Part shown: one piece after another, positions 35,246 to 62,204 of the stretch
Position numbering within the stretch: the first letter of the stretch is position 1
Layout of the letters: each line of letters opens with the position of its first letter
Source: Octopus sinensis
Lineage: Eukaryota
Direction: 5' to 3'
Length of the DNA stretch: 64,000 bases
Assembly (NCBI RefSeq): GCF_006345805.1
Contig: NC_043018.1
Coordinates: forward strand, 12,586,001-12,650,000
Position numbers and translations under genes: made by a program
The notes under the pieces: model-generated
Told to the model about the DNA's origin: nothing
Database searches by the model: none
Seen by the model: only the letters and a program-made list of their open reading frames with translations

Positions 35246-35285
<40 letters not shown>

Positions 35286-35812: not shown

Positions 35813-35843
<31 letters not shown>

Positions 35844-36483: not shown

Positions 36484-36486
<3 letters not shown>

Positions 36487-38841: not shown

Positions 38842-38872
<31 letters not shown>

Positions 38873-39068: not shown

Positions 39069-39099
<31 letters not shown>

Positions 39100-39280
39100 T
39101 ATATATATATAAATAAATATATGTATATATATATATCTATATATGTATATATATTATATATATATATGTGCATGTATGTGCATGTATGTATATATATATG
39201 TGCAAGTATGTGCATGTATGTATATATATATGTGTGTGTATGTATGTATATATATGTGTGTGTGTTTTTATATATATAGC
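37271..39280. repeat. Compound (TA/GA/TG)n satellite
   Basis: Directly visible. Confidence 0.95.
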
Positions 39281-40318: not shown

Positions 40319-40494
40319 ATGCCACGCAGAGGTGAAGAATCTAGTCCAGCCCCACGGCGTAGCCCTCGGGCGGCTGTAAAAGCTTCTGCTTCTCCAAGTC
40401 CCATTATTCGAGTGTCTCGCAGTCAAAGTTCCTCCAGTGCAGCTAAGCAGTCCACTCCCAAGACACGTGCTGCCAGCCCTTCGCCTAAAGGAAA
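40319..40494 (+). CDS. EEP-fusion gene, coding exon 1 (acceptor at 40295)
   Basis: ATG CCA CGC...AA|gtaagt; MPRRGEESSPAPRRSPRAAVKASASPSP...SPSPKG; composition matches the giant exon; the start codon is inferred. Confidence 0.7.
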
Positions 40495-41331
40495 GTAAGT
40501 TGATTTTATTGTTGTATACCTCCATTTTCTCTTATCTACAGAGTTATAGAAGTAAACTTTGTGTATCTTGTGTAAATAGAGACTTCAGTTTGTCTTGGCT
40601 ACTTAATGGTACTAAGTAATAATTATGTAGCTGTAATTATTTCAGCATTTCTTCTACATATTTCTATGGTTTGACCAAGTTAGTGTATGGCTTGGAACTC
40701 TTTCAACAAATATAATTGGTATAATTAGCAAATAATCATATAGGTTGACAAAAGCTTCATTACTCTACACCAAATTTTGGAATAGTGTGTTGATATCTTT
40801 AACCTTCTGGTGACTATATTTCTGTTAAGATACACTTTTGTAGAGATTTAGTAAAATAACTTTCTTGTTATTGAGCAAGTGTTTAAAACTGCAAACTATT
40901 TTTCACATGAAGTTTTTGATAGAAGCTTTAATTTAAATATGAACATTTAAAGTTTGTGTTAGAGCTACAAGTAATCTTCGACAGATTGGCATGTTATACT
41001 TGTGATAGGTTTCTGTACCAATTTTGCTTACCATATTTCACTACAAACAACCCAAGGCAGCAATGCAGTGGGATTGAACATGAAATTTTGGTTGTGAAAT
41101 GAACTTTTTAACCACACAGTTACATTTGTTAAATCTATAAAACCCTTCTTGATGTGGCTACTCAACAGTATTCTTTTTAGTAAATATATTTTCTAAATAT
41201 TCAGTTAACTCTTTAGTTACCATATATCTGTTGAAATAGAATGCCTTTGTTTTGGTTAATTTTGAAAGTAATGAAAAATTTAGTAAAATAACTTTGTCAT
41301 TATCAATTTTGGGTTTGGAAAATAAAATTAA

Positions 41332-42762
41332 CCCTTTTGTTACTAACCTGGCCGAAAAAGTTTTTGGTTCATAATACCAACCCGGCCAAGAAAACCTATT
41401 GTTATTTAAATGCAAATTTGAACCCAAATCTCGTTGGTACATTCGTTAAAACATGTGATTTCACATTGTAAATAGTTAAGTTATAGTATCCGACATTGCT
41501 TGAAGTGATATCTCAACTCAGTGAATTTTGGGAGATTTTTTTCCACTTTTTTTTCGGCATCGATTTTTCTTCAACTTTGAAAATGGATAGGAGTTTCATG
41601 TTATCAAGCATTGATTCCGAATTTAAAGCTTTTTCAACGGAAAATAGGGAGATATCGAGAAAAAGAATGAATGAGGTCTTAAAGCACGTGGTGTACAATA
41701 ATGCCTGGGATATTTCTTTATCCGTTAACCGAAAGCAGCGATTCCGAAGATGGCGACAGCAAAGACGGTTTTACATCGGAACGAAGTAAAAAAACTTTAA
41801 AAATGTTTTTATTAGCAATTTTTCTGGGGAGATAGTTTATCTATAGTCTTTCTTAGGAAGCGAAACCATTAGACTTTTATTTTTTTCAGTATGCTAGTTT
41901 GAAGCGATCACTTTGGAAACAAATTTACGCAGATTGTAAACAAACACAAAAGTTTGGAAAATTTATGAAGCAAATACTAGGTACTGTTGTGGATTTAGTT
42001 TTTATACAGGGAAACTAATGTTAGTCAGCATGGCTTAGGGTATGATGTGGTCTGGAAGTTATTGTTTGAAGCGATCAATGCCGAAACAAATTTACGCAGA
42101 ATGTAAACAAAACACAAAATGGGGGATCAAGGCATGGAAAATTTGTGAAGCAAATCCTGGGAACTGCTGTGGATTTAGTTTTTATACAGGGAAAATAATG
42201 TTAGTCAGCATGGCCTAGGGAACGATGTGGTTTGGAATTTATCACTTCCATACCATAACCAGGGCCGTATATTATTTTTTGACCGATTTCTTTAGTTCGG
42301 TCAAACTTGTGGTGGATTCCAGTATTTCAGTTTATTCCACCTTTATGGTACACCTGTTGTGCATTAAATTCAACTGATGATCTGGCGATGTGCACAATTC
42401 TTCTTTATCAAAATTTTGTTGCATACCCATTTGAATATTAGCTGATGATTCATTTTCTATGGTGATGTTTAAACAAAATTTTAATATTTTTACCTTTTGC
42501 TCAATTTAAAATTTTAATATTTTTACCTTTTGCTCAATTTACCTGGATTTACCTGTAATTAAAGTCACTTTGAGACAAAGGTTATGCAATAGAATTGATT
42601 AAGAACCCTTTCTTTAATTATGTTCCAAATATCACATTAATATGTTGATAAGTAAAAAAGTTACAGTTATTTAATGAAGCAAGTCTAAATTCATGATTAT
42701 TTTAGAATTTAATTGAAACTCATGAGGGGTGTATTTTGGTCAGAAATATAGTAACGAAAGGG
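41332..42762. mobile_element. 1.43-kb non-autonomous TTAA-specific (piggyBac-type) element
   Basis: TTAA 41328-41331 and 42763-42766; TIRs CCCTTTTGTTACTA and TAGTAACGAAAGGG (13/14 match). Confidence 0.8.
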
Positions 42763-43765
42763 TTAACATGGTTTTGGTGGAAGGTTTTTCTTTAGAGCAC
42801 TTAAAAATAGATGGTTTGTATCATTGTTGTAAGGGTGGTCTCAGGTGAGTTGGTATTCTAAATCTAACATGTAAAAAAATTTCCTCTTACTGTGATCATG
42901 CTGTTTGAGACGTTTTGTGTTGAAATATGACATTATCATCATCTTCAACACTAAGTTAATGTCCGTTTTCCATGCTGGCATGGATTGGACAGCTAGGCAG
43001 GAACTGGCAAGGACAGGAGCCACACCAGGTTCCATAGTCTGTTTTGGCCTGGTTTCTACAGCTGGATGCCCACCACAACTCCAGCCGCTTTACAGAGTGT
43101 ACTGGGTGCTTTTTATGTGGCAGCAGCACCCATGCCAGTGTTTTCTCTGTGACACTTTGGATAACATTTTAAGAAATCTGTGTGATCTGTTGTCAAAAGC
43201 AGTGATGTATTTTTCTTGTAGAAGTAGTAACCAAAGAGCAGATTTCCATTGTAGGTAGAGGTGACAGTTATCTCTGTTGTATTATCTTGATTACTCAGCA
43301 AAAGAGAAGTGGACTTTAGTTATTTTAGAATCTAATTTACCATACGAAAGGATTGTTCATTGTTTTATACAAAACTTGAATATTGAAGTTCTGTTTTCTT
43401 TCCATTTATATACACACACACACACACACACATACATACATATATATATATAGCACTCTGGAGCCTACCCAGCTGTATTTATAGCACAGAATCAATCATC
43501 TTGCTACAGTCAAAAATTGTGAAGCATGACTGTCAACACTACTACATGAACCCGAAGATTGCAGAATTCAATGCATGAAAGTACTAGTTCAATCAGAATG
43601 AATATTTAACATTCTACTATTCATTTTATTTTATTCAATTATAATATATTATCTTATAATATATCATTATAAGATTGTAAATAAAACGTGAAAATCAGAC
43701 AAGGTTGGAATTCTTTTTATTAATATATTCTTCTATACACAATCACACACACCATATATATATAT

Positions 43766-43824
<59 letters not shown>

Positions 43825-43891
43825 AATAGGTTTTGCTTTCTTGCTATTAATTGCCAAAATATGTTGAAAACTTTATGGCTCTCATTTGTAG

Positions 43892-43983
43892 GGCAGCAGC
43901 AAAAGGAGCAAAAAGTAAGGTGAAAGAAGAAACTCCTAAAGCAAGTCAGCGTTCACCTCGGACTCCTGCCAGTAAACAATCAG
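43892..43983 (+). CDS. EEP-fusion gene, coding exon 2
   Basis: tag|G...G|gtattg; (K)AAAKGAKSKVKEETPKASQRSPRTPASKQS; phases 2 and 1 fit both neighbours. Confidence 0.75.
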
Positions 43984-45301
43984 GTATTGTATTCTACTAT
44001 TCCTTACTATGTTGTCTCTAAATTCTCAGCAGACTATATTTATGTCAGTGGACAATTAGAATTGATTTACCATATTTTCCAGCATACAAATCAGTGTAGA
44101 ATATAGTGTAATCATTCAGATATTGTTACTGTCTTTCCAAATTCCACTGCATTCCGCATGGAATGTTTGGTCCTCCAAAGTCATTTTGGGGCATAAAATT
44201 GATCTCCTTTTTTCTTCCTGTAAATTTTGGTCAGAAAATACAGTAATAGTAATAGTAAAAGTAGCTCTAATATTGTAAAGGGCAATTATGTACAGCAGGT
44301 TTAGCCTTGGTTCAACTTGATCACCAGATCTATGAGTAAGTGTGGTTATAATGGTGGTCCCTATTCTTACTTGGTAGATTGGAGTGAATTAATTTTCAGT
44401 CTTGCATTTTAAGCTAGGGCAAGAGATATAGAGCTTAGATTTAATCCTCATGACCTGGTTTCAATTTTCAACTGTTCTATTTCACTTACTCATTAACCTT
44501 TTAGCATTTGAACTGGCCATGTCTGGCCCAAATATTCTACTTATTTTATGTTCAAGCCAGCCAGATACAACCTCTCACACCTACCCTACAATGTCATTCT
44601 AAAAATAAACTATCATATCACCAAAATGTCAAAGCTATGAGACAATGCCTGATTAATTCAAAACAATGTGAGTCAATAAGCATTATATTTGAGAACCGAC
44701 CCTTTGCCAGTTATGAATAAAGTATTCCAGTTGATCTAATGAAAGGAACACCCTGCTCCTGAAATTAATGTGCAATTGGCTGAACGCTCCATAGACATGC
44801 ATAATAACCTTAACTTCGTTCTCAGGAGATTCAGTGTGGCACAGAATGTGATAAGGCTGGTCCTTTCAAATATAGGTACTACTTATTTTTGCCAGCTGAA
44901 AGGACTGGATCAACATGAAATAAAGTGTTTTGCTCAAGGACACAGTGTGCCACTGGGTATCGAGCTCACGACCATGCAATCATTAGCTGAATACTCTAAC
45001 CACTAAGCCGTATGCCTTCACACTGGACTAATGCTCTAGAGAGAGGCTCAAGTTTACAAGATCATGTCTTTTTTTCTTTTGTTGTCATTGTTAATAGAGT
45101 AAATCACTGATAAACATTACTTATGAAAAATCATACAAGCTTTGTAAGTTCTCTGTGTTGCCCAGAATGTTCATAGAAAGAACTATCAGACTGTTTTAAA
45201 AAATACTTCAATAAAGAAGCGCAGTGTAATTTAAAATTACACTCGAGGAGCCAGGAGCTCAGTGTAGCTTAAAACCCTAAAAATTTGGTCAGGTATAACT
45301 C

Positions 45302-45526
45302 TTAACCACTTTCTTACTGTATTTTTGTTGAAAACACCCTCTTTATTTCATTTGATTTCAAAAATAATGAGGAATATAGTAAATTAATTTGTTGCCATTA
45401 TTAAGCTGATTTTTGAACATAAATTAATACAAAATTTTAATGAGATTTTTTGAAATCAATTTAAAACAGGAAGTTTGTAGTAGAGAAGCAAAGGTGGCTT
45501 CAGGCAGTTGGTCACAAAAGGATTAA
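45302..45526. mobile_element. About 220-bp TTAA-flanked MITE-like element
   Basis: TTAACCACTTTCTTAC...GTCACAAAAGGATTAA; internal similarity to 40800-40950 and 41203-41331. Confidence 0.55.
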
Positions 45527-45991
45527 AAAGAACTTCATAAGGCTGGACCAGATTTTATGTAAATAATGTAACTCTTGTTTACTATTAATGATTTAAAAGC
45601 TGAAGAGATACGGTTGATTCTGATGAAGTTTGCCTTAGTAACTATGGTTGCTAACCAGATACAATTTGGTGTGGCAATTTACCATAAATGGTAACTTTAC
45701 ACTATCATTAGCAATAAAGAGGAAGGCATTTATGATCTGAAGAATGGTGTAGATGGTTCTCTCTTGGAGTAGCTCAAACTGATGAGGGTCTTTGAAAGTT
45801 GAGCGTTATTAAGTCTCATTTAATTATTTCATTCAAGCTTTAATAACTGGAGTCTGCACCTACCAGGACCCTTTACTGTTAACAGCATCACTCAGTCTCG
45901 GTGCCACTATAGGTAGGGTTTAGTGGGAACAGATTTGATTTTGGATTTTGTGTGTATATAAATAAAATGTATATTTTTTCCTAATTTTTAG

Positions 45992-48900
45992 GTGATTCCA
46001 AAAAGACACCAGCCAGTCGGACGACAGCCCGGCAGTCATCTGCCAAAAGTGCTGCTAAAGGAAAGGGTCGGCAAAGTAAAGATGCTGAAGAGGAAGAAGA
46101 GTCATCATCTGAGGAAGAGACCACCACTACTCCTACTACTACTACAAAAGGCCGAAGCCGGTCAAAGTCTCAATCTGAAGCGAAAGAGACCCCAACACGG
46201 GGTAAAGCAGGGCGGGGCCAAGCCGCTGCTGCTGCTGCTGAAAAGAAGGGACAAAGTGCTGCAACACGTAAAGGAAAATCTCCGTCTGTCAAAGAGGAAG
46301 AGGCTAGTGCTGAAGAGGATCAGGAAAAAGGTAAAACTCAAAACAAAAAGCCAGCTTCTGCTGATACGGAAGCGCGAACTGAGTCAAGGAGCCGGAGGTC
46401 TGTGGGTCGAAAATCTGAGGAGACAGTGACTGAAGAAGTAGCAAAAGGTAGAACGGCGAGATCCAGAAGTAGGGGCCAGGGGAAGAAAGCTGCAGAAGAG
46501 GAGGAGGTTGATTCTGTTATTGAAGAGCCAAAGGGGCGTGCTGCTCGAGCAAGAAGCAGGGGACAATCAAAGGAAGTGAGTGGTGAAGATGCGAGTAAGT
46601 CAGCAGAGGAAGAGAAAGAAACTGGCAAGAAAGAAAGTAGCGATGTCGTTGAGGAAAGTGAAAGTAAAGTGGTGAGTGATGTGAAGAGTGAATCAGAAAC
46701 AAAGGAGAGCAGCGAGGACCCTGTTCTTAAAGGCATGGCCAAAGGATCAGAGCAGTCCATCTCTGATTCAGAGTGTCGCAAAAGGGGCCATGTTGAAGTT
46801 GAAAAATCACCAGAATGTATTTCACCAGCCTCGAAAAAGAAGCGTGTTGGCAAAGGAGCTGCTGAGACATCTCCAGAAAAGGAATCAACTAAAGTTGCTC
46901 CTGTACCTGAGGAAAAAGCAGGGGCTACCGTTGAGGTTAACAAAAGCAGTAGTACTGTTGATCATAAGCCCAAGTTGGCTGAATCTGAGAAGAAAGCTGA
47001 AGAAAAGAAACCGATTCCAGCACCTGTAACATTATTTACTGAATCTAAAACAACAGAAAGAATTGAGACTGATATGGAAGTTGATGTGGTTGAGAGTCCA
47101 ACAAAGATATCTCAGACGCCATCACCTAAGAAAACTCCCACAAAGCAACCACTTTCAGCAGTTTCCTCGCCTAAGAAAGCTGAACCAGTAGCAGTACAAT
47201 CTACCGTAACAAGTACACCAACTGTAATGGCGACAGCTAAAATGACCACTCCATCGACTGGTGTAATTGATCTGTCAAAGAGTCCAGTAAAGCACCAAAC
47301 TGAAGTTCACATATCAAAAGAGGCCCCTGTTGCAGCTGGGCTTCATTCACCAGTGTCTGCTGGACACCAGCAGCAAAGGGAATCCCCTTCAAAAATTCCT
47401 GCTAAATCTCCAGTGAATCTTACCAAAACTTCAGAACCAGTAAAAACAGTTTCTAAATCAGAGTCCATTGTAATTGAAAGTGCACCAAAATCTTCTCCAA
47501 TATTAGCCAGTGTTCCCAAAACTGAAGACCTGCCAGTTCAGTCATCTTTGACTAAATCTAATTCAGAGACTGTTTCTGCAAAAATAAGCAAAGACGTACC
47601 TGATACATCAGCACCATTGAAGGGCTCTCCATTAAAGTCTGAATCTGTTGTGACTAGTAGTAAAGCACCTCACTCTGGAGAATTGAAACCTCATCCCCTA
47701 CCGTCAGATAAAGCTGTTTCTGATAAAACTGCAAAACCTTCTATAACTCAGCCACTCAGCATGGTTAGTGCAAAACCCCCTGTAATTCAAGCTGCAAGTG
47801 CCAAGACTACCATTGCTATGGAGAGAACTCCACCACCACAAACAACAACTAATGTGACTTCACCATCATCCAAGCCAGCTGCAGTGCCTAGTGTTGGCAG
47901 TTTCCCTGCTAAATCTCCTGTAAAACCTGAACTCAAATCACACACTCCTTCTATTATGGCTTACTCTCCTTCTAAACATTTCCCTGAAACAAGCCAAGTT
48001 GGGTCTCTTGCCAGATCTCATGTCACCATGCATGGCTCTCCTGTAAAATTAGCCAGTCCTGTCACTTCTACTTTCTCACCTGCCAAGTTACCTGATCACT
48101 CTACAATACCTCAAAGACCTTCTGAAGGTTCTTCACTGGCAGTGCCACCAAGCACAACAGGTGTTGATTTATCTTCAAAGCAACCTGGACATAGCTCACC
48201 AGTCACCCCCAAGATAATGAGCTATGCTTCTTCACAATCATTACCTGCTAAACCATCAGGTCCTGCCTCCTTATCTACTCTAAGTACCAAGACCAGCAAC
48301 GTCGAGTCCTTTTCAGGAAAACCTTCTCCAACTCCAATAAGTTCTGTTAGGCCCACTGAGTCTTTGTCCATGGTTTCTAATATCAAAACCCCACCTCAGT
48401 CTGCACCACCAAAAGATAAGCAACCAGTTACTAGCGGAATGCCAAGTGAGAAAGCAATGATTACAGGGAACGTATCTGGAGCATCAAGTGGCACTCGAGA
48501 TATCAGCCCTTCCCATACACACGATTTGTCTCTGAAGCCACCTCATGCTAGTTGTACATCATATCCAATATCAACACCACACACCGGATTTTCCAAATCA
48601 GTTTCATCAGCCCATGCTCCACCTACTACGGCTGCCTTACCCCAAAGGATACCTTTGTGTAAGCCACCTGTTGTAACTGCATCTCCAACTAAAGTTACTT
48701 TAAAACCAAATAGCCCAGTCTCAGAAGTAAAACATTCAGTGACTTCACCTTCTATGTACAGTAAAACAAGTTCCCAGCAGAGTGATACCCATTGCAGCAG
48801 CAAACCCCTCCCTGCTACACAGATGTCTCTGAAATCAGTTCCTCAAACAGCAGCTGAAATATCCACTGCCCCTTCACTGGTAACTACACATGTTGATACA

Positions 48901-51227
48901 AAAGTAGTATCTAGTGCTGCTGCAGAACATAAGCAAAGCAAACCTTACTATTTGGACAAACCACATGTGACTGCATCCTCCATGAAGCCTATCTTGCCAC
49001 CTGATGCAGCTCCACCAAACCCTCTTTATTATTCGTCGTCATCAAAGCCACCAATGTCAACATCTGATATGTCAGCCAGCAAATCGTTTTCTCCAACATT
49101 CCCTTCAAATCCAATGCTTATGTCTGCCATGCCAAAGACACCCTCATCTCCAGCTGATAGTGCGGCCATGTCACGGCATATGGGAACAATGCCCCCCAAG
49201 CCAGCCACTCAAGAAGCTCATCATCCCAGTGCTGGTTTTGCCAAGCTTCCAGGTAGTCCACCTGTAAGTATTGCTGCATCGAAACCTCCAATGGCTCATT
49301 CAGCCAAACCTCAAATTACTCATATGACAGGTGTGGTAACAGCTAAGGCTGCCGTTGCTCATGGTACCAGCATTTCATCCAGTAAACCTCAGATAACTCA
49401 TATGACAGGAACTGTCCCACCAAAAGTTTCATCTCCATCCCCAGCACTCGCTAAACCTCCTGTGACACATATGGCTGGGATAGCCTTACAAAAGCCACAG
49501 GTAACTCACTTGGCTGGTGTTGCTCCTCCAAAACCTCTGATACAATCTAGTGAAAGTGGCCTTTCTTCAAAGCCAGTTGTTTTACATGCCATGGGTTCAG
49601 CTTCAAAACCTATTTCTTCACACCCTTCTAGCCAATCTCCTTCTGTGCCTCCATCTCCAAATAAGATGGAGACACTGTCACATGGTAGCAACACATCTGC
49701 AGACACAGACAGAACGAAATCTTTACATGAGAAATCCCAACCCTTGCCTCTTTATGGCATGGACCCCTCTAAATATATGTCTTCATCGAAGAGCTCTGAT
49801 CCTGGTTGTGGAAGGTTACCAGTCGATATGACTCAGAAGCCGTATGGTGGACATTACATGCCTAAATCTGATGGATCGAATCCATACATGCCCCGGCCAC
49901 AGGGTTCACCAGTCAGCTATGCTAAAGGTTTTAATTTAGAGCAGAAATGTGAACAGCTGCAACATCCCCAAAAGTCAGTCGTTCAGACTGTAAGGGTGTC
50001 AGAGCCTCAAGAAGTTAATCTATCTGCCAATAAACCTAAACCCCTTTTGGCCACACCTGGCAATACAGATCAATTTAAGAAGGAAACTATTGATTTAAAG
50101 GCATCTGCAGCCAACAGCCAAGACAGTTTCAAAGTTAAATCGATGGTCCCCGATGCTACAGTAGTTGGAAGCAAATCTCTTAGCGGACCTCACGACAAAG
50201 TGCCTAGTCTAGCAGTTACATCAAATCCAAAGACTGGAGTTCCAATAACCGGTTGTGGAGCACTAAATGTGACAACTAGCAGCCATGATAGCAAGATGAT
50301 GTCATCCAAACCTCAGCATAACACAGGAAGTTCTGTAAATACACCACAACTTAACAAACCTGCATACTTAGCAGCAGGTCATCCAGTCAGCACTTTTGCT
50401 CCTGTCAGTACTCCTTTATTAGTTACTTCGTCTGGCTCGTCAAAAGCTGAATCAGTTGACGTTATCAATGGCACTAAGACGTCAACAGAATCTCAACAAG
50501 TATGTGATCTAAGCAAAAAGCGTAAAACTGATTCCTCAGAGGAAGACACACACAGCTCCAAGAAAGCTCGTAGTGCCGAGGAAGAAGCAAATCTTGTTGC
50601 TAATGGCCAGAAAACCAGTGGAAGCTCTCAGCAAGCATCTAGGATTGCTGGTGAAACCAAAGTAAACAAGACAGAACCCACACAAGTTTCTCAGTCAAGT
50701 ACACAGAGCAGCTCAAATGTTGATGCTTTACTAACAGACTATGTTGTTGTGAACAAGGATGATGTCCCTCCCAAAGATAGTGTTGAAGTTCGGCAGTCAC
50801 TGCCCAAATCTCAACCTAGTAATCCGAAACCCTCTCTGAAACATCCACTGCCTACATCTCAAAGTACAGCTCCTCAGTTGCCTAAACTCTCAGCAAGTTC
50901 TGGGTTGAGTTGTGGTCCTTCAGGAAGTAGCCCTAATCGAGACACCTTGCTCAGTCGCACTTTCAGATTCAACCCAGCCCTCCCTAGCAACGCAATTATG
51001 GACAAGAGCAGACAGTTCAGTGTTGTATCATATAATATTCTTGCCGACTGTCATTTTTACAAGGTTCAGAAAGACCGCTATCCTGCTGAAGAAAAACTCT
51101 TTCTGGAGCTGCCAGCTCGCCATAAGCGGTTGATGGCTGAACTCTCCTACATAGATGCTGATGTTGTATGTTTGCAGGAAGTAGAACCGGAGTACTATAG
51201 CAAGACACTCTCTCCTGATATGCAAAA
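45992..51227 (+). CDS. EEP-fusion gene, giant coding exon 3 (5236 nt: disordered region plus start of the EEP domain)
   Basis: tag|GT...AA|gtaagt; stop-free; in frame with ORF 46402-51231; ends FSVVSYNILAD...DVVCLQEV. Confidence 0.93.
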
Positions 51228-51414
51228 GTAAGTTGGCATAGTCATTTGATTTTATTCACTTTCCAGATTGACTTGTGTGTAGTTACAAGTTTGCATCTGT
51301 TTCATGTAATTATGTGTTTAATCACAACGTGCAGCACCTTTCACAAATAACTCTGCTTAATGAAAAGTTTTTTAGTGAAATTTGGTAAGCAGAAATTGTG
51401 TGGAAGCTTGTTGG

Positions 51415-51448
<34 letters not shown>

Positions 51449-51699
51449 ACAATTGGAGAAAATCATGGCAAAATGGTACAAGGGACCTTGCTTCAACCAA
51501 CATAACAGGCTTAAGGGTGCGAATAGACTGCTTGCACTGACCTGTAATCCTCATATTTGCAACATCTGCAGGCTTTTTTGCAAATTGTTGGCAGGACTCA
51601 AATAGTCCCATTCAACATAAAACATTAGGACTCACAAAGGAAGTGTAGGTTGCTGTATCCTCATTTGTCAAAATTAGCAGGAGAGTCATCATCGTTAGT

Positions 51700-53150
51700 C
51701 TCGTCATTTAACGTCCACTTTCCATGCTGGCATGGGTTGGATGGTTTGAGGGCTAGCAAACCAGAAGACTCCACCAGGCTCCAATCTGGCAAAGTTTCTA
51801 CCGCTGGTTGCCCTTGCTAATGCCAACCACTCCAAGAGTGTAGGGGGTGCTTTTTATGTGCTACCGGCATGAGGGCCAGTCAGGTGGCACTGGCAACAAC
51901 CATGCTCGAATGATGCTTTTTATGTACCAGCAGCACAGGAACCAGCTATGTGGCACTAGTAACAACTACACTCAAATGGTGCTTTTTATGTGCCACCGGC
52001 ATGGGACCAGTCACATGACCTGGCATTGACCATGCTCGAATGCTGCTTTTTGCATGCCACCAGCATGGGTGCCAATCAGAAAGTACTTTCATTGGTCTAC
52101 TGCTAGGGTGTGACACTTTCACACAGCTGTCCTCAACCATGCACAACTCGTGACCATACCAGCGCAGTCGTCTCTCTTAAACACCACGTCTGATGCTTAT
52201 GTCCATCTTTTCTCTCAGGGCACACATCCAGTGGAGCATACTAGCTTCATTCTGTGCAAGCTTACGCATGTACTCAGCAGTCACGACTCATGTTTCACTG
52301 CCATGTAGCATGGCTGTTGGCACATGTGCATCATACAGTCTACCTTTTACTCTGAGTGACAGGCCCTTTGTCACTAGCAGAAGTAGGTGTTTGAACTTTG
52401 TCCAGGCTATTCTTATTCCAGCAGCTACTCTCTCAGATCATCCACCCCTGCTACTGACTTGTCACCTAGGTAACGGAAGCTTTCAGCTACTTGTGGTTTT
52501 TTCCCCCTGGCATGTTTCGGAAGATGTTTTCTGCACATTTTCAGTGTTTATTGCCCCTGAGCATTTGCCGCACACACAAAAATTTCTTCCCAGTTAGCCT
52601 CCCTTTGATATTGTTACACCTCTTATGTGTCCATAACTTACACTGGGTACATCTTATGGGGTTTCTACCTACATCTTTTCCACAGATTGAGCATCTACCT
52701 GAAGGGATTTGTGGTTTGTCTGCCTTCCTACTTATTAAGACTTTGGTTTTAGCTAGGTTGACTCTAAGGCCCTTCCATTCTAGACCTTGCTTCCACACCT
52801 GAAACTTCTCCTCTTGTTCTGATACTGACTCACCTGTTAGAGCAAGGCCATCAGCACAGTGAAGCTCCCAAGGGCATCCTGTTTTGAATTCCTCTGTTAT
52901 TGTCTGCAGGACTATGATGAATAAGAGGGGGCTGAGGACTGATACTTAGTGGGTCCCTACCCATTCGGAGAATGCTTCACTATACGCGTTGCCAGCCCTC
53001 AACTTACTGACAGCATCCCTGTACATGGCTTGAATAGCTCTCATTAACCACTCATCTATCCCTAGTTTCCACACTGGCCACCAGATAAGGGATTGGGGGA
53101 CCTCGTCAAAGGCTTTTTCCATGTCAACAAAAGCCAGGTACAGCAGTGTG
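51700..53150 (-). mobile_element. RTE LINE: RT fragment plus 3' UTR, degenerate
   Basis: LAFVDMEKAFD...VLSPLLFIIVL...GLRVNLAKTKVL; UTR tail at about 51700. Confidence 0.88.
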
Positions 53151-53579
53151 GAAGGTGTTTATAAGTCATTCAAAAACACACAAAAAAAACAGATTTTCTT
53201 CAACATTTAAAATTTATTTGCCAAAATATTTTCGTTGCTTTTTGAGACCTCGACCCGTTCACTGACACAGTTCTGTGCTTCATATGTGTATATTTATATG
53301 TGTGTGTGTATATACACATGTACATACATACATACAGTGTACATGGTAAGAAAGAAGCATACTGGATTTCATTTTTACCCAATAAATTAGGAAAATGAAT
53401 CAGTTATTTCCCTCGGCTACATATAGGGGTTGATTCTTTTCAACAACCTGGGTATGCTATGAGTTTCCAGACAGGTGTTCTACTCAAGTGTTAAGTGTCA
53501 TCAAAATTGATAAAACAATGTAGGAGTTTAGCTATCAACTCTACAAACACACCCACAGACAGAATTTCCCACATTTGTA

Positions 53580-53625
<46 letters not shown>

Positions 53626-53659
53626 ATATATATATATACACACACACACATATATATAT

Positions 53660-54522
53660 TGGGCAATATCTGACAGTGAAACATCTTATGTCTGGAAAAT
53701 GCAAATCTACCCTGTAAAGGACCCAGTAAAAGGGAGGTAGACAAATCAAGGTCCAAGAGTTGTTGAAGACCTTGTAAAAGAACTTGAAAATACTGGTTGC
53801 AATATAACTTGTGATAATTTTTTTTACAAGTCTAGGATTGGCTCGAAAGCTGCTTAGCAAGAAAACTACTTTAGTAGGAACCGTTAGAAAGAACAGAGTT
53901 GAACTTCCAAGTGCTTCACAAATGGAAATCAACAGCACAATATTTGGATTTCAAAAGGATTCTATGATTCTATCTTATTGTCCCAAGAGAAATGACATTG
54001 TCACACTTATGAGTAGATTGCATTCTCAGCCTTCAATTGATTCAAAAAGTGGTAAGAAGAAACCTGAAGTTATAACAAAACAAAAGGAGGATTTGATACC
54101 CTAGATGAAATGGTAAGGACCTACACTTGCAAAAGAATGACTCGAAGATGGCCTATGATTATATTCTACAACATGATTGATATAAGTGCAGTGAATGCTT
54201 TCGTTGTTGTTAAATAGCTTCACTTGCAAAGTTTCAAGGATAAAAGAAGACAGAGCCTAATTCAGTGAGGAAAGGAGCTCTGCTGGAGTTAATGCTAAAC
54301 AAGAACGTGAAAGTCTTCCAGTTCTGTTAACATTTTTTAACCAAACAAGAAAAGACAATCTTCAACTTCATTTGCAATTTCTCAGCCAAAGAAAAAAAGA
54401 CGTTCTTTGTGTGGCCTAAAAAAAAACACAGGAAAACTTGTACTACGTGTAAGAATTGGAAGATCCGTGTTTGCCAAGAACATTCCAATGTTGTCTGCAT
54501 TCACTGCCATGAAAAGCTGTAA
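53660..54522 (+). mobile_element. piggyBac transposase pseudogene fragment
   Basis: WAISDSETSYVWKMQIY...NITCDNFFTS...LVGTVRKNR...DEMVRTYTCKRMTRRWPMIIFYNMIDISAVNAF, plus a Cys-rich C-terminus; frameshifts. Confidence 0.88.
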
Positions 54523-54621
54523 TTCTGTATTTTTGTAATTTATGATATATTCTGTAAGCTGTATTTTTTTTTTATTAAAACATTGTTTGTAACTTATTGA
54601 TTAATTTTACTTTGATTTCAG

Positions 54622-54754
54622 ATTGGGGTATGAAGGTTTTTACAAAAAAAGAGTTCACGAAAACTATGATGAAGGGGAAACAACATTTTATAAGACAAGT
54701 CGTTTTTCTGACCCTGAAAATACAGCTTACAGTCTCAAACAGTTAATAGACAAG
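54622..54754 (+). CDS. EEP-fusion gene, coding exon 4
   Basis: cag|A...AAG|gtaaat; LGYEGFYKKR...EGETTFYKTSRF matches the CCR4-family GYxG..KxR...GCAxFYK segment. Confidence 0.9.
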
Positions 54755-57349
54755 GTAAATGTATATCTCTTTTGTTCCGGACAATTTGGGTTCCTCTGCA
54801 GGATCACCGATGACAGGCTCGTTACAGTTGCTGGAAAAGAAGCCCGTAGCCCTGTTACTCTTTAAATCCTGTTCCTAGCTCTGCGTTTTACGGGACGTGG
54901 TCGTCATTGTCATCATTATCATTTTATGCCTATTTTCATGCTGGCATCAGTGAGATAGTTTGACAAGGACCCAACCAATCGGAAGACTGCTGCTGCACCC
55001 TCGTATCTTTGGTTTGGTTTTAATGACTGGTGCCCTTCCTAATATCTGCCAATTTACACAGTGGGTTTTTTTCTTCTTTCCCCAAGTTACCAGCACTAGT
55101 GAAGTGGTGGCCTTGCAACATCCAAGACTAAAGAACCCAAAGCTCTCTCCCCCACCATCACACACAACTAGGCATGGCCATGTGGGATATGGAGTTCACT
55201 TTGTTTCATGTCGGCTCAAGTTCTATTTTATTGCATGTTAGCATGGGAACATGTCTTCTGTCGTGGCTCCAGATTTGATAAACAGAAACTTTGGAAGTTC
55301 ATTGCATGCATGTGTGTGTGTGTGTGTCTGACTGAGTGTTTACAATCTGTGTGTTTTATGAAAACATTGAGCTAAAATCAGTTTTTGTTGACATTCCTTG
55401 TGACAAAAGTTATCCTTATAACTCTGTGCTTCTGAAGACAAGTAGAACAAAGCAAAAAACATCCCTTGTAAAACAGGCATGGGTTATCAATCTGAAGGGC
55501 AGCCAGCCAGCCAGCCTCAGTAGTATTTATTGTTCATCCCATGCTAGCATGGAATAATGGATGTAAAATGGGTAAATAATGACTGCTGAAGACAGCAACT
55601 GTTTTTTGTAAATAGCAGCAGTACTGTATGAAAGGTGCATAGGAACTGCTTTGTAAACGTGCTTTTCAATTAATAACCTTAAAACTGTTTTCTCCTGAAT
55701 GCTGTGTCTATAGAGATGGAAATATCTACCCTTTGTTACAAACGGATACTCTTTTTTTTTCTTTTCTTTTTCCTGTGGGTGTGGAAACCTTTGAAATATG
55801 TTTGCATGTTTATTTTCACATCTTACTGGGGTGGTCCGGGTAAATTGCTGAAGGTAGTAAGAAAGTGAAACTCTAAAACTGAATTTAAGTTCAATTCTAA
55901 ATTTTCAAACAGACCAAGTAAATATTTTAGGATTGAATCATTTGGCCCTATCATTTTCCTTCCAGCTCAGCACCTCACCATGATAATCTTTTCATGCTGG
56001 CATCGGCTGAACAGGTCACTGTTTAGTCAGAGATGTATATTATTATTGTTATTTTGAGACCCCTCTCCCCAAATTTCAGGCCTTGTGTCTATAGTAGAAA
56101 GGGTTATTATTATTAAGGCATGAACTGGTAGAATTATTAGCACTGACCGAAATTCTTAGTGACATTTCTTCTGGATTTACATTCTGAGTTCAAATTCAGC
56201 TAAGTTTGCCGTTTTCCTTCTGGGTGCTGATAAAAGAGATACCAGCTGAGTAGTGGTAGTTGACTAAACCTCTTCCTCAGAAAATTGCTGGCCTTGTACC
56301 AAAATTTGAAACATAGGCATGGAATTTCAGTTTCATGCTTCTGTAAAAATCTAAATGAATATTTATAAACTAACAGGACCTGTGAATATTTCACAGAATT
56401 AATGGTAAACCTATTGGGTTATATCTGAAAAGTTTACCAAAAAACCTGGAAGCATAGCATGTGTTATGTGTGTATGGGAAGAGAGTCGTTCTTTCTGCTG
56501 TTCATTGAAAAGTGAAAGAAATTGGAATATGATGATTACTTAATGCACTTTATATCACATGGGATCAAGAGAAATAATAGTTTTAGGATTATAAACCTGG
56601 AAAAGTACAGGACAACTTATTACATCTGCTAGAGTACAGAACAAGAAAGTTTTTGCTTAAAATATTGCAGCTATGGATAAAATTTGAAATAAAATATTTA
56701 GATTTAGAATATATCAGCTTTTATTAAAACTAAAAATTTCATTACAATTTATTACCTCTATATGTTATTACTTGTTACTTCTGTTAAAAATTTTAAAAAT
56801 AACTCAAAATATTTTTTGCACTTCAAAAAAGAATTCATATTATTAATTAATAATTAGAAATTTGAAAATAAGTTATAAAAATAGTAGTAGTACATAGTTA
56901 GTACAATCTACTTGTAGCAACAAATTCACTGTAGAATTTGCTTGAGTTATTGCCAAGTTTTCACATTTTTAGTCTTGACATAATGAATTTGCCTACCCTA
57001 AATACTGTTCTAGTTTGCATAAAACTTTCAATCATTGAATGGCTATGGGAGCCCACCCAAGCAGAATAGTAATCAAAGGAGAGTCCATGGATAAATCTTG
57101 TGGTTGAGAACCCCAGGTCTACTGGTCTACATTTACACATCCATGACTAAAAGTATATTCCATTGAACTCCTAGACTTCATCAAACATTATTTTTAATTC
57201 TATAAATAATTATCATAGAATAGAAGGGAAAATTTTGATTTCTCAATTCCTTTTCTGTGCTTTTGCATAGTTCGATTAATCTTGTGGTTTCTCATCTGTT
57301 GTGCCATTGCTTGCTGTCTGAACTACCTGAACTACCTGAAGCACAGACA

Positions 57350-57710
57350 ACGTGACTGGGCGATAAGAAGTGTTCTTCCCAACCACATGGTTTCAGGTTC
57401 AGTCCCACTACATACCAAACGCTTTTGAGTTGATTTAGGAGATGAAATTCGAGAGGCCCGTCATGTGTGTATGTGGCCCCTGCCTCTTTGCCTCGACTTT
57501 ATAGTTGTAAATGAATGACACCATCATGTAAACAGTGTCCTTTCTTTCCAGTCTTCTGTGAACACCTGTCTGATCATGGGCGGTGGTGGGGGGGATATTA
57601 ATTTACTTGGAAACAGGTGAGGGTATCCATCTGTAGAAAATTCCGCCTTAACAAATTCAGTCCAACCCATGCAGGTATGGAAAAGTGAACATCAGAATGG
57701 TGATAATGGT
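57350..57710 (+). mobile_element. tRNA-head SINE with RTE-type tail
   Basis: AACCACATGGTTTCAGGTTCAGTCCC head, then ...GGAAACAGGTGAGGG...CCCATGCAGGTATGGAAAAGTG. Confidence 0.65.
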
Positions 57711-57916
57711 TCTAGGGAATGTTGTATAGCCTTGATAATTCATGGGGCTAACAGACTTTATCTTTTTCCTATTTATGAAATGGTTGGACTTCAAAAATTT
57801 TGTCATGCTATGAAATGTGATTTATTATTATTATGCTAATATATACTTGTGTGATAGTATTTTCTAGATTTTGTCTTCTATTTAATACATGACTGCAATT
57901 GTATTTCTCTGTCTAG

Positions 57917-58096
57917 GACATTCAAGAAATGAGTCTTTCGGAAGAAGTTAAGGAATCAGTACGTCGCTTCATGTGTCTGCCTGATGTACTTCTTGTTACG
58001 AGACTTCGATGTAAAAATACTGGCAAGTTTATCACAGTTGGAAATGTTCATGTCAACTGGGGCAATTTCAAACTTCCGAACATTCAGTGTGTTCAG
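57917..58096 (+). CDS. EEP-fusion gene, coding exon 5
   Basis: tag|GAC...CAG|gtaagt; ...FITVGNVHVNWGNFKLPNIQCVQ (NxH strand). Confidence 0.88.
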
Positions 58097-58916
58097 GTAA
58101 GTGACTTCTTATGGGCTCAGTGTATTTGCTGTTATGATGGCATAGCCTTGCAACGATGTGGTTCTGGCTTTGCTTTTCGACTGGCTAATATTTTGGAATA
58201 AAATCTGATGAGGTGGAAACTAGAAACCTGTCATTTGTATGTGAATGTACATAGAGAGATGGAGAAAGCTTTTGCTGGTGTATGTGAGAGTTAATTTCAA
58301 TTTATACCTCACCAAAATTTGATCAGCTGCAGGTGGCGCTGTCATCATCTCTGCTGCCTTCTAAGATTTGTGGAATAAAAAATTTTTTACTTTAACTCTT
58401 TAGCATGTTGCCATTTTAAAAAAATTTATCATTTTGTTGACGTTATTTTTTAATTTTTACAATCAGTTTAAATGCTAAATGGTTAAACAGGTATAAATTA
58501 GTGGCAGGAAGGGCATTTGGCTGTAAAACTCTACCTCAATATATTTGTCTAACAAATGGTAACATGGGTAAACAGGTAAACTAGATATGGTAATGGTGGT
58601 GGTGGGGTGTCAAAATTGCAATCAATAATTATGCTGTTCAATTAATTAGTGATCTTCCTCTAATTGTGTGGTCTTAATGATGGTTGTTATCAGCCTTGTT
58701 ATGGAAGAATAGCAGAAATGTAATATCAGATTGTTTAGTCTGTTTAGTTGAGTTGTAAGTTTGATCCCTATTCAAGGTCATCTTTGTCTCTCTTCATTTT
58801 ACATCAATAAAATGTTACAAAAGTAGCACGGTCAGTTTCAATTGACTTACAAATCTGTGTCCTTGTACCAATGGAGAAAAACCTAATAGTTTTTTTTTTT
58901 CTTTCTAATGTTTTAG

Positions 58917-59102
58917 ATTGCACGTGCTATCAGGGAAGTAGTGAATCGGGCTGGCAGTGATTCTAACCCTCATGTGATTTGTGGAGACTTCAATTCGAGC
59001 CCAAAGTCCCCTGGCTATCAACTGGCATCGGAAGGTTATTTAGCAGATGCCATGATTCAGCTTTTACAATCTTCTAAAACAATGGAGATGCCCGATGGAT
59101 CG
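58917..59102 (+). CDS. EEP-fusion gene, coding exon 6
   Basis: tag|ATT...TCG|gtaggt; PHVICGDFNSSPKSPGYQL (GDFN motif). Confidence 0.92.
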
Positions 59103-60252
59103 GTAGGTTTTATGATTTTTATGTGCAATTTCTTTAAGAAAGTTATCTTTTGTTGTTAGAGTTCATCTTTTGAACATTTCTGGCTCTTTCTTTTATAGTT
59201 TTCACCATTAAACTTCACATATTCCAAAATGCCAAACTTTTCATCAGTCTAAAATGTTTTATTTTCTACTGCCAGAAAACTGGAACTGTCTTTGGATCTA
59301 TATTCTCAATCTAACCTGGGACTACATGTCTCTTTTCTTTGAAGAAAGAACCCTGTCCAAAACAGAACTCAATTCACTTTTCGCCATGGAACAAATTTAT
59401 ACAAAATTAAATTAAATTCTCAATTGAATTTTTAATAAATGCTGCTGCAGCTTATTTTTTCCTGTTGTGGTATGCTGTAACTTGGCCGGTATAAAAGTGG
59501 TTAACTGACACCTCCCCACCAGATGGGGGGGGGCAACCTGTAGCAGGTTTTATTCATAGTAAAAAATTTGAACTCATAAGTTGAAACACGAGTATTTGCA
59601 AGAGTGTTTTCAATCTTTTTCTTAATTTTGCTGTTTTAAGACGGCTCTAACTTTCCTTAAGTAGATAGGCTGGATAATTGAGCACCAAATGTCTTTGCCA
59701 GATCTAGTGAAGTGCTGGATTTTGGTGGTATGACGTTTGCTTCCCAGCCACATGGTTTCAGGTTCAGTCCCACTGCATCGATTGAATTTGGCAGGTGAAA
59801 CAAATGTGTGTCTTTCTGTTTTCTGTTTATCCTCTCCCACTCTTTGACAACTTGTGTTTATTCATTTAGGTCTCCCATAACTTAGCAGTTTAGCAAAATC
59901 AGACTGATATAAGTAGTGGGCCTCAAAAATAAATGCTGGAGTCTATTTGTTTGATTAAACCCTTGAAGGCCATCCCCAACATGGCCACAGTCCAATGACT
60001 GAACCAAATAAAATCAAAAGTGATAAAGATTATCTTTCTCTCTCTCACCTCCGTTTTGGGGTTTCTTTCATAAAATACAAGTGTACATAAAGTTTTGTAT
60101 TTAAAAAAAAAAGATGTAGTTCTATTTTCGTAATTAGAAAAAAATAGCTTTGTTTGTGGAAGATGTTTGGTAGATATTTTACTGATTTGTAGTTTTCAAT
60201 ATAAAGTTTGAAAAAATAGAATGAATTTCTTAAATTGCTGAATATTTTACAG

Positions 60253-60333
60253 AAATCGGCACTTGTAGATCATCTTTGGGAAGGATTCCAGCACACTTCA
60301 TCCAGTCTTAAGAGTGCCTATGCTGTTGTACAG
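60253..60333 (+). CDS. EEP-fusion gene, coding exon 7
   Basis: cag|AAA...CAG|gtaaga; KSALVDHLWEGFQHTSSSLKSAYAVVQ (LxSAY motif). Confidence 0.88.
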
Positions 60334-62003
60334 GTAAGAACTATTGTTTCTGCATTTCTCTTTTCTTCCATTTTTGTGGGTGGTGGTGGTGGGGGGTTAG
60401 GGGGAAAACGGTTGGATTCCCTCCTCTTACTAAACCATAAATCTGGTTTCTACTTCAAAGTAAGCATTAAAATGTCTGCTTTATTATATGAATTTGACTT
60501 ACTTGTCATCAGTGGCATTGTAGCTGAAATCTTAGTAAATTGTATTGTTTGCCTGATAAATATAATTCTGACACCTTGTCTCTTCATCATTGGAGGCGTC
60601 CATTCATCTCCGGAACTCTCTGACATTTCAAAGTCACTTTCATCTGCACCAATGATGCGACATGTTTGTCACGGGGACATTTGTTAACATGCGGCGGGGG
60701 TGGGGTGGGGGGCTCCTCATAAACAAATAATTTAGCGCAGTGTGAAACGCTATGCATGATAATAAAGTTGAAGGAAACACGTTCACACATTATGCAACAC
60801 GAATGTATTCTGAAAGATGCAGAAAAGGCAGCCAATCATTCTAATTTTACACCTAAAAACCGTTTGGACTTTATTTGGCACAGAGAAGAAAAGTTCTTTC
60901 CCTTCGCCGTTTGGACTTCCAGTGTGGCACCAAGGACAAATGTCTTCTAATGTGGTCTTGTGCATGAATTTATAGAAAATGTCAGAAGCCCATTGTGTGG
61001 GTGTTTGTGTCTTCTTGTCTTGGCGTTGCATGACAATTGTAAAAGTATCAGTCATTTTGAATATTCTGTGAAAATATGTCTGGCCATAGAGAAATATTAC
61101 TTGTTTAGAAACAAGTGTGGATTGGATTGGTGACAGGAAGGTCATTAGGCCGATCTCCTTAAACTCTTTCCAGCCCATGCAAGCATGGAAAAGTAGGCGT
61201 TAAAACAACGAGGAATAAAATATTGCCAAAAAAATACTATTCCCAGCAGAACAATATTATAAACAGATTTATGTCTTCAATTTTGTTCCATAGCTGAGAT
61301 TATTTAAAGTGCTTGCTGAATGCATGTTTTCAATAATTTTAATTGCACTATTATAATGGGAAAAGGTAACAAGAAGCAAAACAATTTCTTCTTGTTGTAT
61401 GTAGATTACTGACGTGCATTCACTTGTTGCTTTAAACATTAAAATAACTTTTGAGGTAATAAAGGATATAACTGCACCATTGGTACAACCCATAACTTAA
61501 CATCCAAATCCGTCAGAAAAAAATCCCTGATTTCTAAAGAAATTCTATTTTTCATGGTTCTGTATATACTTTTAACAATCAAAAAGCTTTCGAAATTACT
61601 CTGGAATCTCTAAGGGTTCCCCTCACCATCATCATTGTTTAACATTTGTTTTCTCTGCTGGTGTTGTTAGTATATAAGTATAAAAGCTATAGTTGTGTCA
61701 GAAAGCCAATTTGAGAATTTAATTGACGTAAATAGGGTTATGTTCCACACAAGTTAGTTTTGTGAAAATTACTTGGAAGAAATATTATCCAGTTTATTTG
61801 GTAGGAAAATTTTCCTAAATGGATTTAATTTTCTTCTTAAATAGGTTGTTGTCCCTGCAGTTAAACTATTAAAAGATCAATATTTTTTTGAGCTGTTTGT
61901 TATTATGAATGTTGATTTGTTGTGAGGGTTATTGGAAACCAAAATGGAATGTGATTATTTTACTGATATTTTAACTATTAATTTCAACTGTTCTTCTTTG
62001 AAG

Positions 62004-62204
62004 GGTAATGAACCAGCCTTGACCACCATGACTCTGCACACCCGTGAATGTTTGGATTATGTTTTCTACAGTTCCACCAGCTTAGAAGCTGTGGGTGTCT
62101 TGCAAGTCCCTGGTAAACAGAGTGTGCTTGACTGCAAATTCATTCCAAACAGAATCTTTCCATCAGACCATCTCTCATTAAAAGCAGTCTTGGCTTTTAA
62201 ATAA
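62004..62204 (+). CDS. EEP-fusion gene, terminal exon 8
   Basis: aag|GGT...TAA; GNEPALTT...CLDYVFYSS...PNRIFPSDHLSLKAVLAFK* (LDY and PSDH motifs). Confidence 0.92.
   Translation, partial: GNEPALTTMTLHTRECLDYVFYSSTSLEAVGVLQVPGKQSVLDCKFIPNRIFPSDHLSLKAVLAFK

Follow-up and report, generated by a model that had tools for sequence, protein, structure and literature searches.

To which family does the hydrolase domain at the end of a 2094-residue octopus protein belong, and what is the long arm that precedes it? The gene lies in a 64,000-nt stretch of the Octopus sinensis genome (hereafter the window; contig NC_043018.1, C22:12586001-12650000), whose DNA is AT-rich and eukaryotic, and its 3′ part encodes a CCR4-type endonuclease/exonuclease/phosphatase (EEP) domain. 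The human CCR4-type set consists of CNOT6, CNOT6L, NOCT, ANGEL1, ANGEL2 and PDE12 (PMC6284557), which we treat as four standard groups: CNOT6/Ccr4, PDE12, ANGEL and Nocturnin. We find that the locus is one real, transcribed octopus gene. Our favoured explanation, to which we give a probability of about 0.72 as a whole, is that its domain represents a fifth animal CCR4-like lineage, and that its arm belongs to a disordered tether found in the spiralian branch of that lineage.

We rebuilt the gene model from the raw sequence, placing splice sites both by hand and by script, and obtained eight coding exons on the + strand (40319-62204) that join into 6285 nt and encode 2094 residues plus a stop codon (Table 1). 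Every coding exon is bounded by a polypyrimidine tract with an AG acceptor and by a GT donor, with consistent phases, and exon 2 is the sole open, phase-compatible AG...GT candidate of the required 92 nt with flank-like composition. In a stop-to-stop scan the main exon appears as an open frame of 1748 codons (45985-51231, +), followed further 3′ by short EEP-like open segments; a frame of that length in AT-rich DNA lies far outside chance. An earlier, sequence-only reading of this DNA had proposed the same exon chain, with the EEP domain beginning near residue 1765 (51016) and keeping the motifs SYN, QE, NxH, GDFN, LDY and PSDH. Our rebuild agrees with it: FSVVSYN begins precisely at residue 1765, and the motifs read SYN, LQE, NVH, GDFN, LDY and PSDH. 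The product matches letter for letter the database entry ‘mucin-17 [Octopus sinensis]’. O. bimaculoides has an orthologue of 2107 aa, 97% identical in the C-terminal part used as query.

Transcript evidence comes from a Logan contig of run SRR3401912, 6903 nt long with a single uninterrupted 2108-codon open reading frame (ORF), whose product is 95% identical to the window protein at residues 1700-2094 and ∼86% identical over the whole protein. Since the genome has introns of 0.8-3.4 kb between the same exons, this contig must derive from spliced RNA, here that of a related octopus. The blastn blocks end at the predicted exon boundaries with 1-5 nt of overhang, the contig agrees with exon 2, and it leaves unaligned just a single nucleotide on each side of exon 2 and ∼45 nt where exon 3 begins. 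The contig also joins exon 3 to exons 4-8, a join that the position of the EEP start inside exon 3 forces in any case. Exon 3 carries almost the whole disordered region together with ∼70 residues from the EEP start (1765-1835), the catalytic N1771 and E1819 among them, so the fusion of the two parts is independent of splicing. Upstream, the alignment begins at 40294/40295, straight after the acceptor-like ...TTTTTTCCAG (CAG), which suggests an unannotated non-coding 5′ untranslated region (UTR) exon before that point. Downstream, the donor of the 3′UTR intron lies just 11 nt past the stop codon, a distance at which nonsense-mediated decay is not expected. The gene is single-copy in octopus, as probes made from the window EEP domain and from a short Lingula paralogue found no second similar locus.

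The EEP domain appears intact in both its active site and its predicted fold. Pfam reports PF03372 alone in the protein (aa 1769-2084, E 4e-15, 56.5 bits, the curated cut-off being 24.5). The window domain keeps every one of the eight CNOT6L active-site residues (N195, E240, H360, D410, N412, D489, D528 and H529), as do six further members of its clade; the reference sequences for this alignment were recovered from PDB searches. Among solved structures, a sequence search gave PDE12 at 3e-27, CNOT6L at 4e-19, ANGEL2 at 7e-18 and, weakest, Nocturnin at 1e-12. An AlphaFold2 model of aa 1650-2094, built on a 44-sequence alignment, reached a mean predicted local distance difference test score (pLDDT) of 84.9 and a predicted template-modelling score of 0.79, with the EEP core above 90. 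Searched with Foldseek, the model matched CNOT6L at 7e-26 (TM 0.81-0.84 on target), PDE12 at 1e-24, ANGEL2 at 2e-22 and NOCT at 3e-21, with bacterial EEP proteins and TDP2 next, some ten orders of magnitude weaker, and it superposes on the solved CCR4-type members as the four-layer alpha/beta sandwich. The catalytic competence claimed by the sequence-only reading is thus well founded, as far as conserved residues and a confidently predicted fold can tell: the active site looks competent, though the substrate is not readable from it.

To place the domain we turned to the octopus genome and to a phylogeny. A PF03372 scan for octopus paralogues was dominated by LINE endonuclease copies, and protein probes were used instead; the ANGEL2 and CNOT6L sequences served solely as probes, and what they retrieved in octopus was confirmed by PDB searches. 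The octopus genome encodes a separate CNOT6, ANGEL, Nocturnin and PDE12, matching CNOT6L at 5e-152, ANGEL2 at 3e-49, NOCT at 1e-69 and oyster PDE12 at 51-67% identity per exon (32-43% in two middle exons), respectively. It also has a second, very divergent PDE12-like copy on an unplaced scaffold, C7755. This copy has a PDE12-type N-terminal part, LQEDD instead of LQEVD and short frame-changing gaps that may be introns. It sits basally in the PDE12 clade on a long branch, and may be either a pseudogene or a paralogue that evolves fast.

In a maximum-likelihood tree of 82 domains and 345 columns (LG+C20 PMSF; support given as UFBoot/SH-aLRT), the window domain falls outside all four standard groups, within a clade of 41 rows that we call clade X (100/97). 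The PDE12 clade (100/100) holds human, fish, arthropod and oyster proteins together with the octopus genes on C2 and C7755; the CNOT6/Ccr4 clade (100/99) holds human CNOT6 and CNOT6L, yeast Ccr4 and the octopus gene on C27; the ANGEL clade (100/99) holds human ANGEL2 and the octopus gene on C11; and Nocturnin (100/100), with human NOCT and the octopus gene on C13, is the outgroup. A quick tree of 129 rows was consistent with this one. The window protein additionally carries LLSRTFRFNP (aa 1742-1751), a pre-EEP motif of the [LIF]x[RK]x[FY]hxNP type that we use together with tree placement to recognise clade X. On this phylogeny the window domain belongs to a distinct orthology group that coexists in octopus with all four standard ones. 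The sequence-only reading had left two possibilities, a position outside these groups or a strongly remodelled member of one of them; the former is borne out, and the latter is not favoured, with a position as sister to the whole PDE12 clade retaining a p-AU of 0.146 (approximately unbiased, AU, test).

A search with the EEP domain returned as nearest relatives mostly EEP-only proteins of ∼340-545 aa (E 1e-98 to 1e-33, 30-49% identity) from Lingula, gastropods, oyster, amphioxus, sawshark, lungfish, sea urchins, starfish, brittle star and corals. Canonical PDE12 proteins, all with PF21171, followed at 26-31% identity (E 1e-25 to 1e-19), and none of the named proteins ranked above them came from an arthropod, nematode, teleost, bird or mammal, so that the absence of clade X from arthropods, nematodes and mammals rests on the named top matches of this one search. 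Since cnidarians and two unidentified deeper branches belong to clade X, the clade predates bilaterians. The short proteins of the clade, as in amphioxus, echinoderms, cnidarians, shark and lungfish, form one orthology group with the window gene, having EEP domains 30-41% identical to it (up to 49% in spiralians such as Lingula) and a pre-EEP [LIF]xRx[FY] motif in common. They differ from it in being only 340-440 aa long, with 25-97 residues before the EEP domain, and in lacking both the MPRxTRRS start and the [YF]VVV...DSxEV motif.

The layout of the window protein recurs among spiralians. A first ortholog search, length-filtered to at least 1150 aa, returned gastropod orthologues of 1153-1262 aa (Gigantopelta, Haliotis, Babylonia), and a profile search of 1.8 billion representatives added about 17 more long forms of 680-1146 aa. 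Cluster names place the latter in the gastropods Batillaria, Patella, Nucella and Plakobranchus, the bivalves Sinanodonta, Pecten and Mya, the nemertean Tubulanus and the annelid Owenia. With these added to the tree, the long forms and a 545-aa Lingula protein make one spiralian subclade (SH-aLRT 99), in which an unnamed 1081-aa protein adjoins octopus; octopus is missing from the sister subclade, which consists of short spiralian proteins. The N-terminal extension measures 220 residues in Lingula, ∼480-940 in molluscs, the annelid and the nemertean, and 1764 in octopus, the longest, while outside Spiralia clade X proteins are ∼340-440 aa and EEP-only. The long N-terminus that the sequence-only reading had singled out is therefore not unique to octopus, as predicted, uncharacterised orthologues carry it too. 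Haliotis, Babylonia and Batillaria also have short copies of 365-485 aa, each grouping with the long forms of its own lineage, which implies that the gene either duplicated several times and lost the arm in one copy, or that these gene models are truncated.

Composition and, in the part modelled, low pLDDT support disorder in the extension. Residues 1-1764 contain 18% S, 11% P, 10% K, 9% A and 9% T with ∼4% Leu, and only 31 aromatic residues in total, none of them W. The first 400 residues are highly charged (K+R 0.19-0.25; D+E 0.18-0.22 over aa 101-400), with aa 1-100 basic only (D+E 0.05), and beyond aa 400 the protein is S/T/P-rich, at 0.22-0.5 per 100-residue window. Across the long forms the extensions are likewise disordered by composition, with ∼1% aromatics, and unalignable but for three islands: the start, the internal motif and the pre-EEP motif. 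In the modelled part of the octopus extension pLDDT is below 50 except at the latter two. Both the disorder and the lack of a leucine-rich repeat (LRR) that the sequence-only reading described hold up: Pfam found no LRR family in the window protein at E<=0.1, no LRR in eight orthologues at E<=5, and no domain of any kind at E<=5 in the N-terminal 410 aa or in seven full-length orthologues. The identity suggested by the name ‘mucin-17’ was rejected, with a mean hydropathy of -1.24 over aa 1-100 and hence no hydrophobic, signal-peptide-like N-terminus, no tandem repeat in exon 3 DNA (Tandem Repeats Finder, score >=40) and no mucin-type Pfam domain (SEA/TM or Cys-rich); by sequence, the name reflects composition only. 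Since Tandem Repeats Finder was negative on exon 3, the extension is not a recent repeat expansion either.

We estimated selection by the Nei-Gojobori method from the window gene and the related-species transcript. The ratio dN/dS comes to 0.32 over residues 1-1764 and to 0.12 over the EEP domain; within the extension it is lowest at aa 1-150 (0.155) and aa 1501-1650 (0.11) and highest in the mid-region (0.4-0.56). With an overall value of 0.32, and lower values at its ends, the long region is translated and under purifying selection. Its start, MPRRGEESSPAPRRSPRAAVKASAS, has a counterpart in gastropods and bivalves of the form MPR[AVL]TR[RK]S[LIV]...SPxR(S)SPRA[ST]TKAS, while the annelid and nemertean long forms start MPPKRR and MPKRSS, not MPR. 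The internal acidic motif reads LLTDYVVVNKDDVPPKDSVEV in octopus, LLKDFVVVNKDEVPAADSAEV in Babylonia, YLKEYVIISESDIPPPDSKEV in Gigantopelta and ELGEYEVIQMSDVPAADSQEV in Lingula, and occurs in several bivalve and unnamed forms as well; its consensus is [YF]VVV-x-[DE][DE][VL]P-xx-DSxEV, it lies ∼75-95 residues before the EEP domain in octopus and up to ∼300 in gastropods, and its pLDDT of 57-77 exceeds that of its flanks (<50). The pre-EEP motif is kept for its NP part across mollusc and brachiopod members and reduced to [LIF]x[RK]x[FYV] in short forms, and AlphaFold2 modelled it as a helix and strand packed on the EEP domain (pLDDT ∼94). By its MPR start, its internal motif and a disordered extension no shorter than 200 aa, the window gene belongs with the spiralian long forms.

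Put together, our favoured explanation is that the gene encodes a putative Mg2+-dependent CCR4-type EEP hydrolase, placed C-terminal to a predicted intrinsically disordered region of 1,764 residues. Its domain would be the sole octopus member of a fifth, unnamed animal CCR4-like lineage spanning cnidarians, echinoderms, amphioxus, shark, lungfish, brachiopods, annelids, nemerteans and molluscs, and not a remodelled CNOT6, PDE12, Angel or Nocturnin. The spiralian branch would have gained the N-terminal extension, anchored by the three conserved peptides, while the middle may drift freely in sequence and length, and octopods would have roughly doubled it. Because all characterised relatives act on nucleotide phosphoester bonds, we infer that the domain removes 3′-terminal nucleotides or phosphate groups from RNA, or acts on a nucleotide phosphoester. 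Rather than taking part in catalysis, the extension would act as a tether that localises the protein and recruits partners. It carries 61 S/T-P sites, two SPKK motifs and two basic clusters resembling nuclear localisation signals (NLS). Together with the abundance of proline-directed Ser/Thr sites and a start that is charged and RS-like, these clusters make a nuclear, phosphorylation-regulated role the likeliest, and the protein is probably nuclear, as the sequence-only reading proposed. Two further likenesses, for which we make no claim, are those of the N-terminal RRSxR-like peptide to nucleosome acidic-patch anchors of the HMGN/CENP-C type and of the internal [YF]VVV motif to SUMO-interacting or ATG8-binding (LIR) motifs. 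A bolder version, which we put forward only tentatively, holds that the pre-bilaterian fifth lineage might act on a substrate unlike those of the four known groups, and that the end motifs of the spiralian arm, of which octopods would be the extreme, might recruit the enzyme to a nuclear, possibly chromatin- or SUMO/ATG8-type partner.

Several observations weigh against this explanation. The transcript support is from a related octopus species and not from O. sinensis, the tree references for ANGEL, NOCT and octopus PDE12 are partial, those of octopus PDE12 and ANGEL having gaps, and the tree includes neither yeast Ngl1-3 nor the Arabidopsis CCR4 paralogues by name. The order of the deep clades is loose: clade X sits next to ANGEL and three green-algal proteins with weak support (86/89). 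PDE12 is the best sequence match among solved structures, and forcing clade X and PDE12 into one group costs 8.4 log-likelihood units, a constraint that the AU test did not reject. Several clade X members are also named ‘PDE12-like’ by NCBI. The window gene might on these grounds be the octopus PDE12 orthologue, its PDE12 N-terminal domain and mitochondrial presequence swapped for a disordered region, yet we regard this as very improbable. The two proteins do have in common a CCR4-type EEP fold with the same eight catalytic residues (∼28% identity) and the lack of an LRR. Octopus already has a canonical PDE12 and the divergent C7755 copy, the PDE12 clade excludes the window gene at full support, and the window domain is 27-30% identical to PDE12 versus 38-49% to named clade X members. 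Pfam did not find PF21171, the PDE12 N-terminal domain, in the window protein. PDE12 proteins are ∼550-610 aa and mitochondrial (PMC3177208), in contrast to the 2094 residues of the window protein and its acidic N-terminus with NLS-like clusters; as read from the sequence, the start MPRRGEESS has acidic residues atypical of a mitochondrial presequence. Still less credit is due to a prediction chimera, in which an S/T/P-rich open frame or mucin-like gene was wrongly joined to a downstream nuclease gene. Apart from the RefSeq name and the mucin-like composition, which could suggest it, this explanation runs against the start of the EEP domain within exon 3, the same architecture in gastropods, bivalves, an annelid and a nemertean, the missing mucin features and the spliced transcript, whose one 2108-codon ORF spans all exons and already refutes it.

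The rivals that concern function fare better. That the EEP domain is a phosphatase acting on a small molecule or an RNA-end phosphate, and not an RNA nuclease, is a serious possibility, although we consider it the less probable side; it touches the substrate only and is compatible with the rest of our favoured explanation. The weak grouping with ANGEL leans this way, and so do the positions equivalent to P365 and F484 of CNOT6L, which reportedly contact adenine in the 2010 structure (reference 83 in PMC6284557): they are P/F in PDE12 and yeast Ccr4, F/T in the window domain and variable within clade X, where the alignment is gappy. With F/T at these positions, poly(A) specificity is not to be assumed, a further point against our reading. 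Passages in two papers (PMC6284557; PMC9525292, reference 58) indicate from ANGEL2 and NOCT, active on 2′,3′-cyclic phosphates and NADP(H), that an intact CCR4-type active site need not mean a deadenylase. Because the same catalytic residues serve both chemistries, the sequence does not decide between a deadenylase, another exonuclease and an end-phosphatase. We judge it unlikely that the disordered region is evolutionarily neutral filler and that the protein works like the short EEP-only forms. The mid-region dN/dS, the many indels between octopus species, the range of extension lengths (∼220-1764 aa among spiralians) and the short paralogues retained by gastropods would all fit such filler. 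On the other side, dN/dS stays below 1 along the entire region and falls to 0.11-0.19 at aa 1-150, 1051-1200 and 1351-1650, three peptide motifs are kept across classes, the internal and pre-EEP ones in Lingula as well, and the extension is retained in at least four spiralian phyla.

Other known systems resemble the window protein in part. CNOT6, CNOT6L and Ccr4 share its catalytic residues, and CNOT6L is its best structural match; yeast Ccr4 moreover has a low-complexity N-terminal region. The window protein differs in keeping neither adenine-contact residue and in having no LRR, so there is no evident way for it to dock on CAF1/CCR4-NOT. A CNOT6 that has lost its LRR was rejected as an identity, with octopus CNOT6 a separate gene on C27 and the two in separate clades. 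ANGEL1/2 likewise combine an EEP domain with a non-LRR N-terminus, but the long ANGEL insertions are missing from the window domain, the score to ANGEL2 is modest and octopus has its own ANGEL on C11. Plasmodium (apicomplexan) CCR4-like proteins, 1400-2500 aa long, are alike in layout, with a long low-complexity N-terminus and a C-terminal EEP domain; they differ in being only 23-26% identical and in falling within the plant/protist CCR4-like part of the tree. By these sequence comparisons the shared layout is convergent architecture, not orthology.

The enzyme kind is well known, and the protein is already public as an automatic, uncharacterised and wrongly named prediction. In the literature searched no paper on clade X was found, which is weak evidence of absence; measured against it, three things are new or so far undescribed: the animal-wide clade, its spiralian long tethered form with anchor motifs and the octopod extreme of ∼1,760 residues. 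Unexpected substrates have been a recurrent finding in the small CCR4-type family: 2′,5′-oligoadenylate (2-5A) and mitochondrial poly(A) for PDE12, NADP(H) for Nocturnin and 2′,3′-cyclic phosphates for ANGEL2. Conserved from corals to sharks yet apparently absent from the usual model organisms, clade X is an obvious candidate for another activity and, if our placement is true, would have escaped study by being missing from mammals and not seen among named arthropod and nematode matches. The spiralian long forms would be a clean natural case in which a folded enzyme is tethered by a disordered segment that evolves fast apart from its conserved anchors. The automatic names within clade X are misleading and should not be propagated: besides ‘mucin-17’ and ‘PDE12-like’ they include ‘muscle M-line assembly protein unc-89-like’, ‘microtubule-associated protein futsch-like’ and ‘glucose-repressible alcohol dehydrogenase transcriptional effector’, which follow composition or best hits. 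The short forms also go by ‘CCR4 homolog 1-like’.

Table 1. Coordinates of the window gene, its protein features and the octopus paralogues (window positions unless a contig is given; functions of NLS-like clusters are predicted)
Feature	Position	Strand	Remarks
Coding exon 1	40319..40494	+	aa 1-59, phase-2 end
Coding exon 2	43892..43983	+	92 nt
Coding exon 3	45992..51227	+	5236 nt; aa 91-1835
Coding exon 4	54622..54754	+	
Coding exon 5	57917..58096	+	
Coding exon 6	58917..59102	+	
Coding exon 7	60253..60333	+	
Exon 8	62004..62215	+	coding to 62204 (stop 62202-62204), then 11 nt of 3′UTR, then donor
3′UTR intron	62216-62874	+	
Exon 9, non-coding 3′UTR	62875..63414	+	from related-species transcript alignment
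Conserved N-terminal peptide MPRRGEESSPAPRRSPRAAVKASAS	40319..40393	+	dN/dS 0.155 for aa 1-150
Two KGRxARxRSRGQ copies	46444..46566	+	aa 241, 270; within highly charged first 400 residues
NLS-like basic cluster KKKRVGKGA	46834..46860	+	aa 371-379
Four KPQ[IV]TH[ML][TA]G copies	49306..49533	+	aa 1195-1270; S/T/P-rich middle
Bipartite NLS-like KKRKTDSSEEDTHSSKKARSA (KKRK-x13-KKAR)	50515..50577	+	aa 1598-1618
Internal acidic motif LLTDYVVVNKDDVPPKDSVEVR	50728..50793	+	aa 1669-1690; common to gastropod, bivalve and Lingula long forms
Pre-EEP motif LLSRTFRFNPALP	50947..50985	+	aa 1742-1754; 10-22 residues before EEP domain
EEP (CCR4-type) catalytic domain	51016..62201	+	aa 1765-2094, exons 3-8
Catalytic N1771	51034-36	+	
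Catalytic E1819	51178-80	+	
Catalytic H1924	58049-51	+	
Catalytic D1963	58986-88	+	
Catalytic N1965	58992-94	+	
Catalytic D2046	62055-57	+	
Catalytic D2083 and H2084	62166-71	+	
Octopus CNOT6	C27:19587466-19600567		
Octopus ANGEL	C11:8298919-8314932		
Octopus Nocturnin	C13 ∼57230078-57230971		
Octopus canonical PDE12	C2:75980242-75997822		end ...PSDHIAQICTLKWK
Octopus second PDE12-like copy	C7755:∼651700-653300	-	locus L065 4700-6330; unplaced scaffold

The upstream neighbour of the nuclease gene, at ∼923-8583 (+), consists of exon-like segments of the C-terminal part of a cullin (PF00888, E 7e-37, profile ∼496-588 and beyond), and between it and the nuclease gene lies a full-length U6 spliceosomal snRNA gene at 18848-18954 (-; Rfam RF00026, 102 bits, E 2e-25). 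Just 5′ of coding exon 1, ∼5.3 kb of TA / TATG-type simple repeat occupies 33888-39199 (Tandem Repeats Finder scores up to 2497), with GC content down to 14% and an extreme G-over-C skew, and a 63-nt tandem repeat of 3.2 copies is found at 36675-36875. Two reverse-transcriptase-like retroelement ORF fragments are present, one at 33025-33852 (-, 275 aa) and one at 52541-52945 (-, 134 aa), the latter inside intron 3 of the nuclease gene.

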